Assembly (NCBI GenBank): GCA_964036045.1
Contig: OZ038378.1
Coordinates: 163,184,001-163,248,000 of the forward strand
From: Eutreptiella sp. 'Long Island Sound 2002'
Taxonomy: Eukaryota > Protista > Euglenida
Length of the DNA: 64,000 bases
Direction: 5' to 3'
This document shows positions 9,501 to 58,391 of this stretch, in pieces. A model generated the notes under the pieces. That model was given only the letters and a program-made list of their open reading frames with translations, was not told the DNA's origin and did no database searches. Position numbers and translations under genes: made by a program. The stretch's first letter is position 1; each line of letters starts with the position of its first letter.

Positions 9501-12500
9501 TCACATCACATCACATCACATCACATCACATCACATCACATCACATGGGACATAAAGCAATGCATATGGGCATGCAAATCTCAACCAGCATTGCTATGCC
9601 AAGGCACACAGCACAAGAATAGCTGTCCCTGTCACCTCATCCCAGCACAGACATACAAGCTTTGTAATTGGCATCAGCCTCACCACACATCAGCAATAAC
9701 AGCATGATCTCCACATGGCCTTCATCGCAGGCGAGGTGCAGAGGTGTCCAACCACAATCTGCATAACGAGAAAACGATTTCAAAAATCCAAATAGATTTG
9801 GTTGTCACACGCCTCACTCCCTCACTGACTGGTAGTGTCTGGATGACCAATGAGATGGAAAAAAGACCTCTGTGTGAAGAATTGCTCCTGTCGTTCGGGC
9901 TATGGCAATATCAACAATGCAACGAGCACACGCTGAGGAAAATCCATTGATTCTTCCCACATGGGTAGGAACTTCCGGTTGAATATACCAACCCTTTATT
10001 CCTTCCCACCCACCCGACCTACGGTACCAAACATGGACAGCAACAGAACAGTGTTACCAAACGACAGCAACACAAATAAAAACCCAGTATTTTCGGCGCA
10101 TGGTGAGCTGCAGTGCGGATTCCTCGGACACCCAATCACAGCGGTGGTGCATGCACCCGCGCAAATCTGTGCCGAGCAAAGCCTATCTACAGACATTCCA
10201 ATGCATACAGAAAACGCTGTTGAAATCCCCCTGCACCCGGGACTAGAGCCCCCCTTAGCCCACCCCGCAGCAGACAGCGGATTTGTCGCCGTACTCGATA
10301 TTCCTCAAGCACCCAACGGTCCCTCGATCTTGGTAAACGCACGCAATGAAATGGTCCGCGCCCGACAAGTACGAAAGCAAGGGCCATTGAACACTCAAAT
10401 GCCAGGTACAGGGGATTCAAGCCATGAACCCCTTCACGTTGACATTCAAAACGTCAGCTCCCGATGCGCTGTACAACAACATAAAGGTGAAAGAACACAC
10501 TTGGGGCGTTGGCATCGATACCCATGGATTTGTTCCACTTGATGTACCTGAGAAGATGCAAAACCGGCATCATCAGGGTTGCAATGAGGGGTCAGATCAC
10601 TACAGCAGAGCGCTGTTAACATTATGGACAAAAAGGGATTCCAGGAATCAGCAGGCGGTACCAGACAGCCCAAAAAATGAGACGTAGGAGAGCCGAGGGG
10701 CATTCCGTCCTTCAGGGATCCTTGCTGAGGAAAATACAAATCCTCAAAATGCACCACAAAAAGAATCCAACAGCTGCACTCCAGACTTCTTAGATCGCAT
10801 CAGGCTCATAGACGGACAGTGTGAATGGAACATGTGGAAGAATGATATTCATGCACAAACCACTTCTGAAACCACTTTACTAATAATTGTTGCGCATTGT
10901 TCTTACCTGGAAGCGCTGGAATGCGGCTGGCAGGTCACCCCGAAAGCCCCTGCATTGCTGTTTGTGCATAGGGGCTCCCCGCCCCTCTTCGAGGGGCCTT
11001 GCTAGAGGCAGTAGAATTCCAGACGGCGTTCGATGGGAAACAAAGCAAAAGATAGCAAGCGGCACCATCGACAGGATCCACTCGTGCTAACAGACGTAAA
11101 GTGTGACTATGGCCTAGCCAGCGTTTAATTCACCCTTGTGTTCTGCTGGGGCCCCTGAAGATGCAGTCATCTGAAGTGCACCCAGGTTTGGGGGTGGGAA
11201 CAGAAATGAATCAACATGATCCGCACGACACGCTGATCATTTTGGAGTGTGTCATGGGGGTGATTTTTTCCCCTCAAAAATCCCTGTCCAAGCGAAGCGG
11301 CCCAATTTCAAGCTGGTTTGCTGAGTCAAACATGACTTTGGTCACAGGAGCCCCTCTACCAGGCCCCTGTCCGTTTATGGGGGGCTTGGATGCAACCCCC
11401 CCCCCCCCATGAATTTTCACTTGCCGTGGACTACTGAATGGCGCACCCGCTTGGCGAGCAACTTACCCCTGCGTGGGACAAATGCCCATTCCGCCATGTG
11501 GGAGTGTGCGCCGTGCATTATTGCAGGTGACCACCTGTCTTCTTTCTACGTCTGCCATACCAACAACGTACCTCACCTGTTGCCGGCCTCTTAAATTGGC
11601 CGATGCACCAGCAGACCCAGGGTTCTTGCAATGAGCAATGCTCGCTTTCTCCGGGTGGCCCTTTTCTGCGTCCCTTACTCTGCGTCCCTTACTCCAAGCT
11701 TCTCAGAGGGCGCGGCGCTTTTGGAGGGATTAGGAAGTTAAAAATAGTTGCAGTCCAAGCCTGTACGAAGCATACCACAAGATGAGCTCGACAACATCAG
11801 TATGGCCATGCTCTGCAGCAATGTGCAACACATTCCATCCCATAGCTGAATGAGACGTGGACAGGCGTGAGCTGACATGCCGGGGCTGCAAACGAAAACG
11901 ATTCACACCCTCGGAAAAAAAAACGTCCCTCATTGAGAAAAATCGGGGAGGGCTCGTGGGTTCAGTTGATGCTTTGTTTCTTGAGGGGTCAGAGAATGCC
12001 TGTTGTCCAATCTTTCTTTTGGACTTCCTCTCGCAGTTGGTTTGGTTTCATCAGCATGGCCTTCAACATTCTACACCCCTGAACATTGTGCTGCGCACTC
12101 AGCACCCCAAGCTCCCGTTTACAAGCTAGCCTGCCGAGGTAACAACTCCGGCAGAGGCTATGTCTTACCAATCGTTTACCAATCTACCAAATGCTCACAA
12201 ATATCCAAACCTCCGCTGTCGTATGCATCAAAAACCTTTTGCAAAAATCAACGAAAAAACAAAAATAACTTGTAACTTGTAACTTTGCAGCTGAAACTTT
12301 TCCTGGCGTCTGGGAGAATGCCATCTGCTATGAATACAGTATCCCCATGCGGGCGCTGTATCTTGGGACGACACACGTAGGAAGCAATGCCCAGGAAGAT
12401 AGAATTGCAGAAAAAATACTTGGCGACAGAATCTCCAGCTGAACCAACCAGTGCAATGCAGACCTGCACTGCCAGTCGAACCGCACATGGCCAGCACCGT

Positions 12501-15500
12501 CCCCGCCCTTGCTCTCACACACACACACGCACGCGCGCGCGCACGCACGCACATACTCATGCACACACCCGGGGAGCCGACTGCTCCGTCACCGTAAGAG
12601 ATCTCACCACACGATGCGTCCAGAAACACATGCGCCACACCTCGTCAAAAGCAACGCACCAACTCTTCGGCCACAACACAAACGAAAGTTAGGGTGTCTT
12701 TCCGGGTCTGCAGAGCGCAACCCCGCACTGGGTTCCAGCCAAATTGCAGAGATTTCACTGGAGTGTCACGGCGTTCGGGTGGCACCTGTTACTGCTGTGT
12801 AATCCGTCTTGGCATGCCGCAGCAGGATGTCCATACAGTCAAACGAACCGCCCAATGCAGCCAGATGGAGCGGTGTCTCCTTACCGTCGTTCACGGTGCG
12901 GTTTCCCACTGCGTGCAACGAAAAAGATCAATCGCCGCCTGGACGCATACTTACACGCAAACATGCACGCATACACGTGCATTGCACGCACCAGTCGACA
13001 CACACTGTGCGCAAGGTGAGGTCAGTGCCCATCTTTCCAGCCACTCGGTGATGCAACCCTCCCCCCATCGGCTCGACAGGGGACTGCCCCAAGACCAATG
13101 TGGTACACGCCTCGAGAGCGACCAGCCGAAACGCAACGTCCCGCATAATTGAGGTACGTACAAACGAAAAGTGCGCTGAGTCAGGCAAGGCTCAGGCCGC
13201 CATTGGAAACAAGAGGTCAACAGCAACAAGCGGACTGAATGTGAAGCATTCTGGCGCCGGCATGGACGCAAAGGGGAAGAAGCAGCACGTGGGAGAAGAC
13301 GCACAGTGTCCCACTCTCACCAGCCAAAAACATTGCTTGTAATGGCTTGGCACGAGCAATGTAAACAAGTATTCCGACCAACTCAAACCGGCGCGTACAC
13401 CCAGAGGTACCAGCCGGCACGCTTCGTGAGCCTGTATGGCACACCCTCTTTCTGGCTTGCAACAGGCTTTGTACAACCAGGGGGGAATCCTATATCTCCT
13501 TTGCACCGATGCACCGCAAAAATGCCCTTCATATGTCGGTGGGTGCGTTGGGGCAGCAGCCTTCTGTCCTGTTGACTGACTGCTACAAATCTGGAAAGAG
13601 AACCAGTTTTCCATTCAACTGCTCGTTGCTTCCTGCCGTCGGTATTGATGCAAGAATCGGCAGCCATGGCATCAGCAGCTTGAGCTGCTGCTGGTAGAAC
13701 CAAAGACTCCCGTGCAGTCAACGGTTAGACAGACCAGATCTTGGCAGGCAGACTTGCCAAATAGCTGCTTTGGGCATATTGAGTGCTTGGGTTCAAAGGC
13801 TCTTCAGGGCCAGTCAGCTCTCTATTTCGCCCCCCCCTCCCCTTTCCCCCCCGGAAGACTGAGCCTCCTTTTGCAAGCAACGAGTGCTGTCCTGTTGTCG
13901 TGAACTTCAGCCACACCTTCTTGGGGCAAGGGTAACACAAAAACTTCATGTGCCCTCTGAACGCAGTGGACACCAGGGAACACCTACTGAAAATCCTTGG
14001 GGGATCCTTGGGCCAAGCAGCAGAGAAATTTTAACAACCTGGGCGGCTCGGCAAAGCGCTGCAGTCGTTTCAATGCACAGACGCACACCTAGCGACGACA
14101 TCTGCCCAGAATACGAATGGACGGCGGGGAGATTGCCGACGACGAGCTCGGTCCCGAAAAAACGGGAGCTGTCGGCGCCGAAACCGGCGATGCATTTCAC
14201 CAACGAAAACTGACTGCGGCCTTCCTTGCGTTCCCATGAGGTCTAACAGAACTGGATGACGAATTCGTCCACCAAACCTCTTATTTGTTTCACTTTGGAC
14301 TGACGTTATGCGCAGGACCCTATTGTCGTCGTCGGGTGCACGACAACGACCAAAATAAATCATCTGGAATCAACGACATGATCTGCAGCCGGCAACATAT
14401 CTTTATTGACCCCCTTTGCCCTGGCCTTTTTCCCCTCGCAGGAGCAAACCTGTCTCGAGATTAACGTCAACGTCATAAATGAGAACGAGTTCCTCGACAA
14501 CTGGTGCTTGCATTTTCAAGCAGGCAAGATGGACTGGTGTCATCCCGCCCTCTGGAAAAGCAAAGCGAGGGTCAGAGCGCAGGAGCATGGGCTTGCAGTG
14601 GTGGTGTTGGGCCGGGTTGGCGGGCTTGGGCACCGTACCCTTTAGAGAGCACGCCCTAGGAATCATGGGCAGCATATACAACACACGCAGCCAACGCATA
14701 GCGCGGTGTCAGCATCCTTGAGCGAAAACGCATCCCCTACCAAGCATGTTTGCAAAGGGTGCGAGGGCTGTCGGCGCGTCTCATCCCGAAACCCAAGACC
14801 CTCACAAGGCCAAGCAATGTGTAGCTGGCCCCGGCATGATAGCATTGCGTGGCATGCAGCCTGTGGGGGGTCATATCGCCTCTATCTTTCCCCACCTGTA
14901 CGTGGATAGTGTGGTTTGCATGGCGTTTGCGATGTACGCGGTCAATATGGTCTGCCTGGTGTGTGTGGTGTGCGTCGTTGGTGTGGTTTGCATGCGTCAG
15001 CGCCTCGGCTGATCAGCAATCTACCGATATCTAAATCTCCTCGATCCGCAGCTATGTGCAGTGGTCTCCACCCATCATTTCACATGGAATGCAGGGGGGG
15101 CAACACACACACACACACACACGCACAAATGTTTCTTTTTTGTATTTTGAAAAAATACCTCAATGCGAACTACTTGCCCAACCTGCTGACTGCTGCTCTC
15201 TGCATTCCGGTTAAAAAGAAACTGGACCTCGCCGGGATTCGGTCCCCGTGGCTCCTTCCTGAGCAGCAGGCTATCAGCTAAACTACAAGGCCCCTGTGCA
15301 CTGTAGGTAAGCTCATTGTATATAATCTGGACTACCAAATACCGGAAATGCCGCGAGGATATCTATGAACATCCCAAGAGCACGCCTTAGGAATCACGGG
15401 CAGCAAAAACAACACGCGCGGCCAACGCATAGCGCGGTGTCAGCATCCTTGAGCGAACCCGAAACCCAAAACCCTCACAAGGTCAAGCAATGTGTAGCTG

Positions 15501-54523: not shown

Positions 54524-55269
54524 ATGTAGCCAATTCGCCGAGACCGGCACCTGAAGATCCCTGCCTCGAGCTTTAATACCCCGGCTCGAGGAGGAGGCAA
54601 TCAGGGGCTTGGAGATCCCTGCCTCGAGCTTTTCCCCGGCTCGAGAAGGAGGCATTCAGGGGCTTTCTTTCTTCCTTTGCTTTCACGAGGCATAGCAAGG
54701 CGTAGCACGTTTGGGTCAAGGCATGGCAAGGGGTAGCATGGTTGCGTCATGGCATGGCAAGGTTCAATGCTCGTGTGCGTACATTGATCTATTGTGCTTG
54801 CACATTTGCTATGGGACTTCATACCCCCCTCCTCCTTTCTTAGACACATGGATTTCATGGATTTGAGTCTCGGCGATCGGGTGTTCTACACCCGCTCCAA
54901 TGGCATGCGAGTTCCTGCAACGGTCGTTGGGATGGCGGGCGATGGGTTCATCCACTTGGAGTACTACCAAGATGCTCTACGGGTGGTGAATCGCCAATGC
55001 AAGATGGAGTCCATCTCTTTCGCCATCCCGAGTACGTCCTCCCCACCTCATTGCACCCCACCTCCGCCTAGTGCCCCCCAAGAAGCCCCAAGTAAGAGTC
55101 CCGAGCCAAGTGCCCCGGGTCCTTTATCTCCATCCCCGCCATGCGACACGGAGTGGAGTCCCGAGCCAAGTGCCCCCGAAGAAGCCCCAAGTCCTTCAGC
55201 TCCATCCCCACCACCCGACACGGAGCCGAGGGCCTCCACACCACCTTTGTCCCCTCAAATTGAAGACAA

Positions 55270-57986
55270 CCCTAGTGACCCCTTTTGCACACCATGGTGC
55301 CATGTCCTATGTTCAACCGGTGTTCAACTGACTTCACCTGGGCCCTTGAACCACCCCTGAACAGCGGTTGAACACCCCCACCGCGCGTAGTGCAATTTTA
55401 CCAAAAATTAAACTTTTGACGTATCACCATGCCATTCCAAACCATCCATGACGATGTACCATGCTTTTAACAACATACTAATGCCCAATGCACTATTCCA
55501 TGCCATACCCCTCACATTGCCACTCCCTTTCTATCATGTCCAAGAGTAGCGTCAACGCCGCCTTGGTGTTCAACCATGCGGTTGAACACCCCACTTGACA
55601 CATTCCCCTAAGCTTTGACCTTCATTGTGGTCCTTTGGCTTCCATTCTATCGTGGATGGTGTTCAGAGGTTTTTGCAGTGTGCACCTGCCTTATCCAAAT
55701 CAATTATAACCACAAAACCATGGATTTTCTGCTACTTTCATATTGCCGCCCATACGCGTTCGGCCATGTTCAACTGCGTGTTCAACCGCGCGGTTGAACA
55801 CGGTTGAACACGGTTGAACACGGTTGAACACACACTGGAGCGCGTTAGGAGAAATGCCGCACGTAATCGCAATCACACAACAATGGCACCAACAATTCAC
55901 GTCAAATTGGATGAACAATCTCAGTGCCTGTCACCATGGGAACCCCAGGTCCAGGAGTTCAGTGCGCATCGGAGCGGGAAGGCGGTGCCACGCGATAGAT
56001 GTATACGCCACGATGGCATACCTTTCACCCTCCCATCGCTCCGGCCCATGCGTACGCCACGCATTGAAAATCACCCCCTTTCGTGCATCCACAACAACCC
56101 CTTGCACAATTTGACGCCCACATTGCATCCATGCTTGACGCTGCGCCCCCCCCTCCCCCCCACCACCCATCCACGCCGTAGTAAAGAAACCACCACCACG
56201 GAAATCACCCACCGCCACCACCCCACTCAACGCGGAGTCATCCCTTGGATGTTTGTGTACATCCATGGGTGCACATCCGTTGCCCCACACGATGGAAATT
56301 GCGGTGTAACTGAGGGACGGTAAACAAACCGTGAGGAAATTATTTACAAGGCGCACAACATGTGCATCATCATGTGTCCTCTTAGACATGCCCACGTGTG
56401 TAAACGTCGGAAACTTCCTTGTTGCTGCCCATAGGATCCGGCGGTACTCTCCTCCATGTTTCTTCTTGTGGAGCCATCCCTTCAAGCCTTGTAAGGCTTC
56501 ATGGACCTTGTCGGCTAGTCACTTTGAGTCCACGGCCCATAGCGCTTGCGTCTCCGGTCCGACCTCCTCCTTCCCATCATCGGCACACTCCTTCTCCCTT
56601 GTGCTCGCCATTGCCCTTTCGCTCCCACCTTCGTGCATGCCGTCTTGAGGTCCACCTTCCTCCTTTGCATCATCTCCAACATGAGGTCGTTCATTCTCCT
56701 TGGCATCGTGCTCCACCTTGGGGTTGTTGAGGGCATCGGACATGCCCTGCTTGTTGGCATCGTCCACGGACGTGCCCTCCTTGTTCGAATCCTCCACGGA
56801 CATGCCCTCCTTGTTGGAATCGTCCACGTCATTTGAAGTGCTCTCCTTCATGGGATCCTCGGAGTCCTCCTTGGTGCCATTGTCCGACGCATTGGTGGTA
56901 CTTCCCGCGATTGCTTCCGTGCTTGCGATTGCTTCCGTGCTTGCCCCATCTTGACCTCCATCACTTGTATCTCCGCTCTCGGTTGCCGCGTCTTGGCCTC
57001 CATGTTTTGCATCTCCGCTCTCGGTTTCCTTGTCGTGGCCTCCATGTCTTGCATCTCCGCTCTCGGTTTCCTTGGTCGCTTTCTCCATGTTCTCCTCCCA
57101 CTTCGCCAACATGGCCTTTGCCTCATCCATGAACACTCCTTGCATACATGCAACGCACCATGGTATGCATGTAGGACATGTAGAGCACCTATTTTTCGGC
57201 ATTTCCAAGTCAAGGATCAACCGGACGGCATCCTTGGGTGTAAACACCCTTTCCATGACCTTCCGGTCATTGCGTCGACTACGCCGCCCACTACCCATTC
57301 TAGTCTTGAGGCGTTCCCATAGTGTACGACCACCCTTGGATGCGGTGAACAAGTTGACCAAATCACTCATCAATTCATCCGATTGTAATCCAGTGTAGTG
57401 ATCTGCAATACATTGCTTCAAGTTTGACGTTGGCATTTTTGATTGTAAAATGAGAGGGATCCTTGCATACAAGTAAGAAACCACAATGGGGAATCTCTTG
57501 GTGCTCTAATTTGTTCTTATTGTTACGTTATTTTTGGTGACACTACCATATTGCACAAAGGTGAAATTAAATATTCTTCAATTCAATGCGTCATGTATAT
57601 AGTAAAAAGCGAGCTGGTGGCAACTACTACACACCATGTGCATTCCCTTTACCGCCACGTGTTGGCCACCACGTGCCGGCTCCAGTTTTCATGTATGTGG
57701 TCACCACACCGCCACCTGCCCATTGGTAGTAGGTTCCAGGTTTTAACTGGGTTTTAGGGAACAGCTCAAAACCAAAATTGTGGGACAGGCTACATTTACC
57801 AATTAACCACTGTTGAACGCGTGATCGCGCGAGCACGCGCCACCGATTGGCGCGATAGGCCAGTTGAACTGTTCAACCGCGTTCAACCGAGTACAACTGG
57901 GGGGTTGAACAGCAACATGCTGTTCAACTGGGTTCAACCGCTGTTCAACCGCTACGCTCAAAGGTGTGCAAAAGGGGTCACTAGGG
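55270..57986 (-). mobile_element. Non-autonomous CACTA/CMC-like DNA transposon carrying a 2OG-Fe(II) dioxygenase gene
   Basis: Perfect 24-bp TIR CCCTAGTGACCCCTTTTGCACACC (55270-55293 / 57963-57986), AA duplicated on both flanks, and roughly 20 GTTCAAC/GTTGAAC subterminal motifs clustered at 55311-55830 and 57813-57952. Confidence 0.85.
55931..57484 (-). CDS. Cys-cluster + acidic repeat linker + TET/JBP-like 2OG-Fe(II) dioxygenase; one in-frame TGA at 56519-56521
   Basis: ORFs 57484-56519 and 56485-55931 are in one frame (...VDSK*LADKVHEALQGLKGWLHKKK...). The C-terminal domain has YTAISIV...VHKHPRDD.ALSGVVAVGDFRGGG...VIFNAWRTHG..RWEGERYAIVAYT...LGFPW. Likely start MPTSNLK at 57436. Confidence 0.75.
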
Positions 57987-58391
57987 AAACATGAAGATGA
58001 CGCCGAAGCTCCCCCTCCCGTAACGGTTCCCGCCGGTAAGCGCGCTTCGCAGTACTCGTCGCGCGCTCGTGCATCGGACAAGGTGCGCCGACAAGCCACA
58101 AAAGATGTGACCATCAACCTCACGGCCGCTCAATGGGAGACAATCACAAAGTGGTTGGAGGATCACAAGGTACTTTCGTTGAAATTGTACTTCGTGTCAT
58201 GTATATGCATTTCAGCCCGCCACTACCAACATATGTGCTCATCTTTACCCATGGTATGTCCCCACTTTATTTTAGGACCCAAAAGGGCGGTACCAATATA
58301 AGAAGGCCGCGGATGCATACTTGGTAGAGCTCAAACCAAATTACGGTATGTGGCACTACACGCAATGCCGCTTTCGCCTCTTTTGCCTTGA

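Follow-up and report, generated by a model that had tools for sequence, protein, structure and literature searches.

Enzymes that modify DNA are known to be carried by transposons within a narrow range of hosts, namely TET/JBP dioxygenases in fungi and DNA methyltransferases (DNMTs) in dinoflagellate and charophyte retroelements. An association between TET/JBP genes and KDZ/Plavaka elements was reportedly noted first in basidiomycetes. More recently, Kojima (2025; PMC12730594) described fungal TET/JBP genes in EnSpm/CACTA, RAG1-like ESTA, Plavaka, hAT, Harbinger, IS3EU, KDZ and Helitron elements and proposed that they provide an escape from methylation silencing. In that study, ESTA elements generate TA duplications and Plavaka elements 2-3 bp duplications, the ESTA transposases resemble RAG1 by HHpred, and the CMCT clade is characterised by C(2)C and H(3-4)H motifs. 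Here, we describe a 2717 bp transposon copy at positions 55270-57986 of a 64,000 nt stretch of the Eutreptiella sp. 'Long Island Sound 2002' genome (contig OZ038378.1, positions 163,184,001 to 163,248,000), the whole of which is referred to below as the window. The original prediction, made from the sequence of the window, was that a CACTA-type element had captured a TET/JBP-like dioxygenase as its only cargo, and no description of such a pairing was known to its author. The pairing of a transposon with a TET/JBP gene is already known, from fungi. The family to which the window element belongs is real and of interest, and the window element itself is an ordinary deleted copy of it. Overall, we consider it likely that this family is RAG1/Transib-like, that its oxygenase is produced by UGA readthrough, and that the enzyme acts on nucleic-acid bases.

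The window element is bounded by perfect 24 bp terminal inverted repeats (TIRs; CCCTAGTGACCCCTTTTGCACACC), located at 55270-55293 on the forward strand, which is the 3' end in gene orientation, and at 57963-57986 on the reverse strand, the 5' end. These are the only two sites for the 24-mer in the window, where the chance expectation from shuffled sequence is 0, and the same 24-mer terminates every fetched copy that extends to an element end. A 2 bp target site duplication (TSD), AA, is present on either side (55268-55269 and 57987-57988). With the element and one copy of the AA removed, a host open reading frame (ORF) that is proline-rich and includes a 72 bp repeat is restored: the interrupted part (54794-55267, forward strand) resumes in frame at 57987-58169, with ...gaagacaa joined to acatgaa.... 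Of the 30 GTTCAAC sites in the window, 20 lie inside the element, while only 11.6 would be expected in the entire 64 kb. The subterminal region at 55294-55840 includes 11 GTTCAAC/GTTGAAC sites, among them a 10 bp tandem run at 55791-55830, and the 5' subterminal region (57485-57962) includes a further eight at 57812-57949. No transposase ORF was found in the window copy. In these respects the element is as it was first described.

A full-length relative, found at L011:8942-15993, is 7052 bp and ends in identical, exact TIRs. In gene orientation, positions 1-857 and 859-2717 of the window element match this copy with 9 and 10 mismatches, respectively (approximately 99% identity), and are separated by one filler base, at 57129, which takes the place of 4335 bp (L011:9800-14134). 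Base-by-base comparison with L011 placed the left breakpoint of the deletion within a GTTCAAC site. When the window element was compared with ten loci by BLAST, only its last 1859 bp were contiguous elsewhere, the first 857 bp being found kilobases upstream, and contigs assembled from four other sequencing runs part from the window precisely at 57128/57130. The single deletion of 4.3 kb removed ORF-B, ORF-C, ORF-D and parts of ORF-A and ORF-E, and the appearance of the oxygenase as sole cargo is an artefact of this loss. The 321 aa ORF on the reverse strand is a chimera, in which the first 118 codons of ORF-A (57130-57484; Cys-rich, CxxCxxC...CxxC) have been fused in frame to the C-terminal two thirds of ORF-E (56522-57128; acidic and of low complexity, with internal repeats of 42, 30 and 18 bp). 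Thus, the reverse-strand frame that had been read as one gene does end in an oxygenase domain (55931-56518), but an in-frame TGA breaks it at 56519-56521 and the part above 57129 is an artificial fusion. We conclude that the window element is a young, non-autonomous internal-deletion derivative of an approximately 7 kb, multi-gene, cut-and-paste element.

The full element contains six ORFs in one orientation, encoding a Cys-rich protein of 132 aa (ORF-A), proteins of 501 aa (ORF-B) and 257-321 aa (ORF-C), a Lys-rich protein of 390 aa (ORF-D) and an acidic protein of 301 aa (ORF-E), which is followed by the TGA and the oxygenase domain. None of the six matched a Pfam family, and a search of the ESM Atlas with the conserved part of ORF-C returned no credible family. 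Clusters of GTTCAAC/GTTGAAC occupy both ends of the element and separate every pair of ORFs (in L011 at 9794-10031, 11603-11640, 12253-12492, 13746-13813 and 15434-15495), and they recur in a second subfamily described below. They may serve to bind transposase or to signal gene boundaries, or may be hot spots for deletion. Deletion derivatives were also found elsewhere: a further copy, L008, carries three different internal deletions, and P0053 is a deletion chimera from the second subfamily. An abundant variant of the element, seen in runs X7, X9 and X10, lacks 200 bp at window positions 57600-57801 and has a T as filler. This gap coincides with the first of the three deletions in L008, and the variant resembles a deletion sub-lineage of its own that has been amplified.

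Many contigs of one assembly encode a protein identical to the product of the oxygenase ORF, and the full 7052 bp element is present in tens of copies that are approximately 99% identical. The window copy departs from the majority sequence at seven positions. By word depth in the runs from this organism, the block 56221-57108 is approximately 20-80 times more abundant than the less repeated right flank, and some subterminal blocks are higher still. Single contigs of 6.5-7.1 kb that represent the element were also assembled from two estuary metagenomes. The TSDs of all four complete copies are 2 bp, namely AA in the window, CA in L008, TG in L011 and AG in the second subfamily (L013:9231-15349), and the TIRs of the family are 24-27 bp and begin CCCT, with CCCTAG...CTAGGG in family 1 and CCCTGC...GTAGGG in family 2. 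A precise empty site is represented by a single contig of run X7, in which 55267 adjoins 57987 and 2 letters are shared; against it, the depth of this contig is 2.9, and runs X9 and X10 did not repeat it. The family is a real, recently active TIR transposon. Full copies and 2 bp duplications, which the original prediction proposed to look for, were found, and the autonomous partner appears to be RAG1/Transib-like rather than a CACTA element.

The oxygenase gene recurs in other subfamilies. The second subfamily, represented by L013, has different TIRs and proteins that are only 38-48% identical to those of the first, and retains the same six-ORF order, ORF-A, ORF-B, ORF-C, ORF-D, ORF-E and then the oxygenase. 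In L015, an ORF-B that is 27% identical is linked to an oxygenase that is 32% identical. Across three diverged subfamilies (27-48% identity) the oxygenase gene is thus conserved and syntenic, and it is an integral part of the autonomous element. As the linkage has been kept across such deep divergence, a recent capture of the oxygenase by the window element, as first envisaged, is argued against.

ORF-B has 41 paralogues in the same assembly, at 32-60% identity, and their alignment conserves RGDGFPCG, GGDSPW, a Cys/His pattern (C278...C296-x2-H299 in ORF-B) and GD-VESLN-LK. An AlphaFold2 (AF2) model has an RNase H-like core with a helical insertion of approximately 230 residues, and the motifs map to beta1, just past beta4 and to a C-terminal helix of this core. 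When this model was used to query the PDB with Foldseek, the top 49 matches were exclusively RAG1, BbRAGL and HzTransib (E-values 5e-9 to 7e-5), with Hermes next at 5e-3, and a language-model (Atlas feature) search likewise placed ORF-B beside RAG1 clusters, at 0.95. As RAG1/Transib is its only structural match, there is good support for reading ORF-B as a DDE transposase whose core is RAG1/Transib-like. Several observations weigh on the other side. The ORF-B model is poor (mean predicted local distance difference test score, pLDDT, 53; template modelling score, TM, approximately 0.3), RAG1 is unsupported by sequence, as ORF-B and 17 paralogues gave no Pfam match and a profile search of PDB sequences was empty, and the C(2)C and H(3-4)H motifs of the CMCT clade are not evident in the ORF-B alignment. 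The 2 bp TSD and CCCTAG ends also differ from the canonical Transib values, which are 5 bp duplications and CAC... ends. Given structural matches to RAG1 and Transib only, the missing sequence support, and the 2 bp duplications and CCCT ends, we therefore call ORF-B RAG1/Transib-like within the broad CMCT grouping, and a member of neither Transib nor CACTA.

The differences from each of the described groups are considerable. CACTA/EnSpm (CMC) elements are expected to end in 5'-CACTA/CAC...GTG-3' and to generate 3 bp duplications (2-4 bp across CMC), whereas the ends here are of the two CCCT types given above and the 2 bp duplication, though within the CMC range, is not the EnSpm value. They also encode a Transposase_21/TnpD-type transposase with C(2)C and H(3-4)H, neither of which is matched by ORF-B. 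The likeness to CACTA lies in the subterminal repeat arrays, here the GTTCAAC clusters at both ends. With Transib, RAG1 and ProtoRAG (HzTransib and BbRAGL) the family appears, from the model, to share the fold of the RAG1-type catalytic core. However, no sequence match to RAG1 Pfam models or PDB chains was found, the duplications are of 2 and not 5 bp, the termini have nothing like a CACxxTG heptamer, C...CxxH is found instead of C(2)C and H(3-4)H, and a RAG2-like partner was not recognised. The only paper retrieved by a full-text literature search combining Transib with Euglena was unrelated. The fungal CMCT elements that carry TET genes (EnSpm, ESTA and Plavaka) are alike in being cut-and-paste elements with a double-stranded beta-helix (DSBH) dioxygenase gene beside the transposase gene; the RAG1-like transposase and 2 bp duplication are shared with ESTA, and Plavaka has duplications of 2-3 bp. 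Unlike them, the family described here has a protist host, duplications (AA, CA, TG and AG) that are not TA-specific, CCCT... rather than CA..TG termini, six ORFs with GTTCAAC clusters between the genes, and an oxygenase that falls under the Tet_JBP threshold, has an H-x-H motif and lies behind a conserved UGA.

The oxygenase domain is 195 aa, followed by a stop, and is encoded on the reverse strand. An exhaustive phmmer search with this domain identified 75 relatives, of which 43 were aligned (A2). The AF2 model made with this alignment is a compact DSBH, with a pLDDT of 94.9 and a predicted TM score of 0.91, and all of its top fold matches are DSBH oxygenases. The C-terminal residues that had been pointed out, VHKHP, RTHG and RYAIVAY, are present, and the putative ligands are H88, H90, H157 and R166, among which H88, H157 and R166 are nearly invariant over the 43 relatives. 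In distant relatives the metal-binding motif reads H-[RK]-D-x-H-N, while in the window protein and its paralogues within the genome it is H-x-H followed by D-[DE]. The fold and ancestry of a 2-oxoglutarate (2OG)/Fe(II) oxygenase are established.

Assignment to a family is less straightforward. The domain had no significant match in Pfam (E-values up to 1), PHROGs or PDB sequences, CcTet being reached only at an E-value of 0.85, and so it matched neither Tet_JBP nor 2OG-FeII_Oxy_2, the pair of models between which it was hoped that Pfam would decide. Among the 43 relatives, Tet_JBP matched 6, 2OG-FeII_Oxy_3 matched 5 and 2OG-FeII_Oxy_2 (AlkB, PF13532) matched none; the Tet_JBP scores, at 15.9-18.1 bits, are below the gathering cut-off of 34.9. 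In the ESM Atlas, the closest clusters by shape are unnamed (TM 0.75-0.80), followed by a PF20691 (TAGT) cluster at 0.71, a Tet_JBP cluster at 0.65 and AlkB clusters at 0.58-0.61. We take PF20691 to be the TET-associated glycosyltransferase family. The window domain has the DSBH fold of TET/JBP enzymes, which include NgTet1, CcTet, JBP1/2 and the dinoflagellate proteins CryTJ1 and AmpTJ1 (PMC11572971). Where these would have an H-x-D...H iron triad and a 2OG-binding Arg, it has H88-x-H90, H157 and R166, with His in place of the Asp. As no Pfam model reached threshold and the metal motif is H-x-H, not H-x-D, the predicted membership of TET/JBP (Pfam PF12851) is not established. It is reasonable to lean toward a nucleic-acid base oxygenase, since enzymes of that kind make up most of the best structural matches. 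The near-equal scores of TET, AlkB-family and prolyl-hydroxylase folds likewise do not support a TET/JBP assignment. Against the preferred reading of the enzyme stand the weak Tet_JBP scores and the about equal frequency of 2OG-FeII_Oxy_3 matches among the relatives, and the His in place of the acidic ligand of H-x-D, with which catalysis could be altered or lost.

The closest relatives outside the genome (phmmer E-values to approximately 1e-7; AFDB clusters at E-values of 1e-13 to 1e-10 and TM of 0.7-0.83) are also borne by mobile elements. Many are long proteins; the named ones come from Symbiodinium, are annotated as 'Copia protein' or 'Pol polyprotein from transposon TNT 1-94', and carry rve and RVT_2 domains. 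Unlike the gene described here, these DSBH domains are part of retrotransposon polyproteins, have kept the canonical H-x-D and are only 20-30% identical to it. The domain was observed inside Copia-type polyproteins with RVT_2 in P0080 and P0088 and with rve in P0077 and, weakly, P0080, and the P0075 cluster holds a 'Copia protein'. No description of this domain was found in a paper on the cargo of dinoflagellate retroelements (PMC5890265). The distribution of these sequences suggests that one domain family has been recruited repeatedly by unrelated mobile elements.

Two other activities were weighed against base oxidation of the TET/JBP type. The first is demethylation or repair of the AlkB kind, in which the oxygenase would strip alkyl or methyl groups (N6-methyladenine, 6mA; 1-methyladenine, 1mA; 3-methylcytosine, 3mC; or, in RNA, m6A) from the DNA or transcripts of the element. 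AlkB domains in some plant RNA viruses act as demethylase/repair enzymes, and the presence of the domain in retrotransposon polyproteins, which have an RNA stage, would suit such a role. Foldseek also placed ABH2 and AlkB (E-values 5e-6 to 5e-5), together with PiuC, ahead of CcTet, in a list comprising ABH2, AlkB, PiuC, NMAD-1 and CcTet that extends to 1e-4, and the structures of ALKBH5, NMAD-1, AlkB, FTO, ALKBH6 and PHD2 score no more than 1 Z unit from NgTet1. Nevertheless, the lack of 2OG-FeII_Oxy_2 matches among relatives that include Tet_JBP matches, the lower TM of the AlkB clusters than of the Tet_JBP and TAGT clusters, and the C-terminal R-Y-A-I-V-A-Y, from which the AlkB motif differs, make it unlikely. 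The second, also improbable in our view, is that it is a protein hydroxylase of the PKHD, PHD or OGFOD1 type acting on a host or transposon protein, such as the ORF-E product or a chromatin protein. The Swiss-Prot models matched are mostly PKHD-type hydroxylases, and PiuC, PHD2 and OGFOD1 score nearly as high as the nucleic-acid base oxygenases that predominate among the best matches.

The TGA at 56519-56521 is followed by CTAG and lies immediately ahead of the first helix of the domain, which is modelled with a pLDDT of 97. The fold begins 43 residues ahead of the first ATG, and the intact domain therefore cannot start from an internal AUG. The TGA is kept in all ten fetched copies, which at approximately 99% identity is uninformative, and it is found at the same boundary in the second subfamily (L013, 42% identity) and in L017 (31%). 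In the three families the contexts are TGA CTA GCC, TGA CTC TTC and TGA CTC GCA, with frames open on both sides, and UGA CUAG is a recognised leaky context (bioRxiv 10.1101/2021.04.18.440353). L012 (P0005) was too decayed for the stop to be compared, and L014 and L016 differ in their layout upstream of the domain. Removal of the TGA by an intron was rejected, because the only GT...AG interval would be 8 nt, homology on the domain side extends right up to the stop, and a metatranscriptome contig crosses the TGA unspliced. From this pattern we infer programmed UGA readthrough that would yield a minor ORF-E-oxygenase fusion, with 56519-56521 as the candidate site. Counting against it, the case is made from conservation and context, and the RNA evidence consists of two metatranscriptome contigs of low depth, for which DNA carry-over could account.

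In a third alternative, the oxygenase ORF would be carried as a dead passenger: the TGA would be a nonsense mutation in the founder and H-x-H a decayed site, the domain would never be made or would have no part in catalysis, and copies would be spread by the transposase of full-length elements. This would account for a stop shared within family 1, where near-identity means that sharing proves nothing, for the lack of an ATG ahead of the domain, for the H-x-H and minimal RNA evidence, and for the extra stops in the L012, L013 and L017 copies, but it is very unlikely, as TGA-CT recurs at the same domain boundary in families that are 31-42% identical and have open flanking frames, paralogues that are 30-50% identical (P0050, P0051, P0052, P0055 and P0065) retain H88, H90, H157 and R166, the domain folds with high confidence, and gene order is kept across three subfamilies.

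With the base oxygenase made by readthrough as the preferred reading, the life of the element might be as follows. The window copy would be mobilised in trans by full-length copies. Rather than being translated from a start codon of its own, the oxygenase would be added to the C-terminus of the acidic ORF-E protein through leaky decoding of the conserved UGA-CU stop, and would be an iron/2OG enzyme with an unusual three-histidine site. Its targets would be nucleic-acid bases, either in the element's own DNA or as host marks on that DNA, and their oxidation may help the element to evade silencing or to mark its own DNA, a role like that suggested for TET/JBP genes carried by transposons in fungi. 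Functional TET/JBP homologues that make 5-hydroxymethyluracil (hmU) and silence repeats, and that need not belong to the clade of the window domain, have been documented in dinoflagellates (PMC11572971).

A wider reading is offered tentatively, and as a whole we think it somewhat improbable. The domain may belong to an unnamed clade of base oxygenases found almost exclusively on protist mobile elements, comprising RAG1/Transib-like transposons, dinoflagellate Copia-type elements and giant-virus/virophage genomes. In the transposon lineage, the enzyme would combine a three-His iron site with low-level UGA readthrough and would write or erase a T or C mark (hmU/base J or oxidised 5-methylcytosine) on the element's own DNA, thereby evading silencing. 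The family would extend modifier-carrying transposons to a protist lineage, with a RAG1/Transib-like transposase, a different and uncharacterised oxygenase clade and an unusual mode of expression via a conserved leaky UGA, and the link to Symbiodinium Copia polyproteins suggests one enzyme family recruited repeatedly by unrelated mobile elements. The family also widens the diversity of RAG1-like transposases, here with a 2 bp duplication. Its many near-identical copies, natural deletion derivatives and compact 195 aa domain make it a tractable system in which to ask what use an oxygenase is to a transposon.

The surroundings of the copies are themselves repetitive. The host ORF interrupted in the window (54794-55267) matched no Pfam family, and an Rfam scan of the entire window gave zero matches. 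At 55066-55230 this ORF contains proline-rich direct repeats of 60-99 bp, and word depth there is higher than in the right flank, so the host sequence around the insertion may be multi-copy. One contig from run X10 (depth 39) joins 55197 to 58053, omitting the element together with 73 bp of the left flank and 66 bp of the right, and may come from a paralogue or allele of the locus that lacks the insertion. In L011, the full-length copy is embedded in a long tandem satellite (L011:7856-8962 and L011:15932-17155), where every frame to either side of the copy translates as a periodic, peptide-like repeat that includes PLGQELCLQYPWAKNSVFSTPGPRTLSSV. As the periodic repeat is present on both sides, this copy appears to have inserted into a repeat array. 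Other copies are adjoined by Ty3/gypsy-like genes (RVT_1, RT_RNaseH, rve and Chromo), at L012:1668-4625, L015:10670-14113 and L001:8471-10459.

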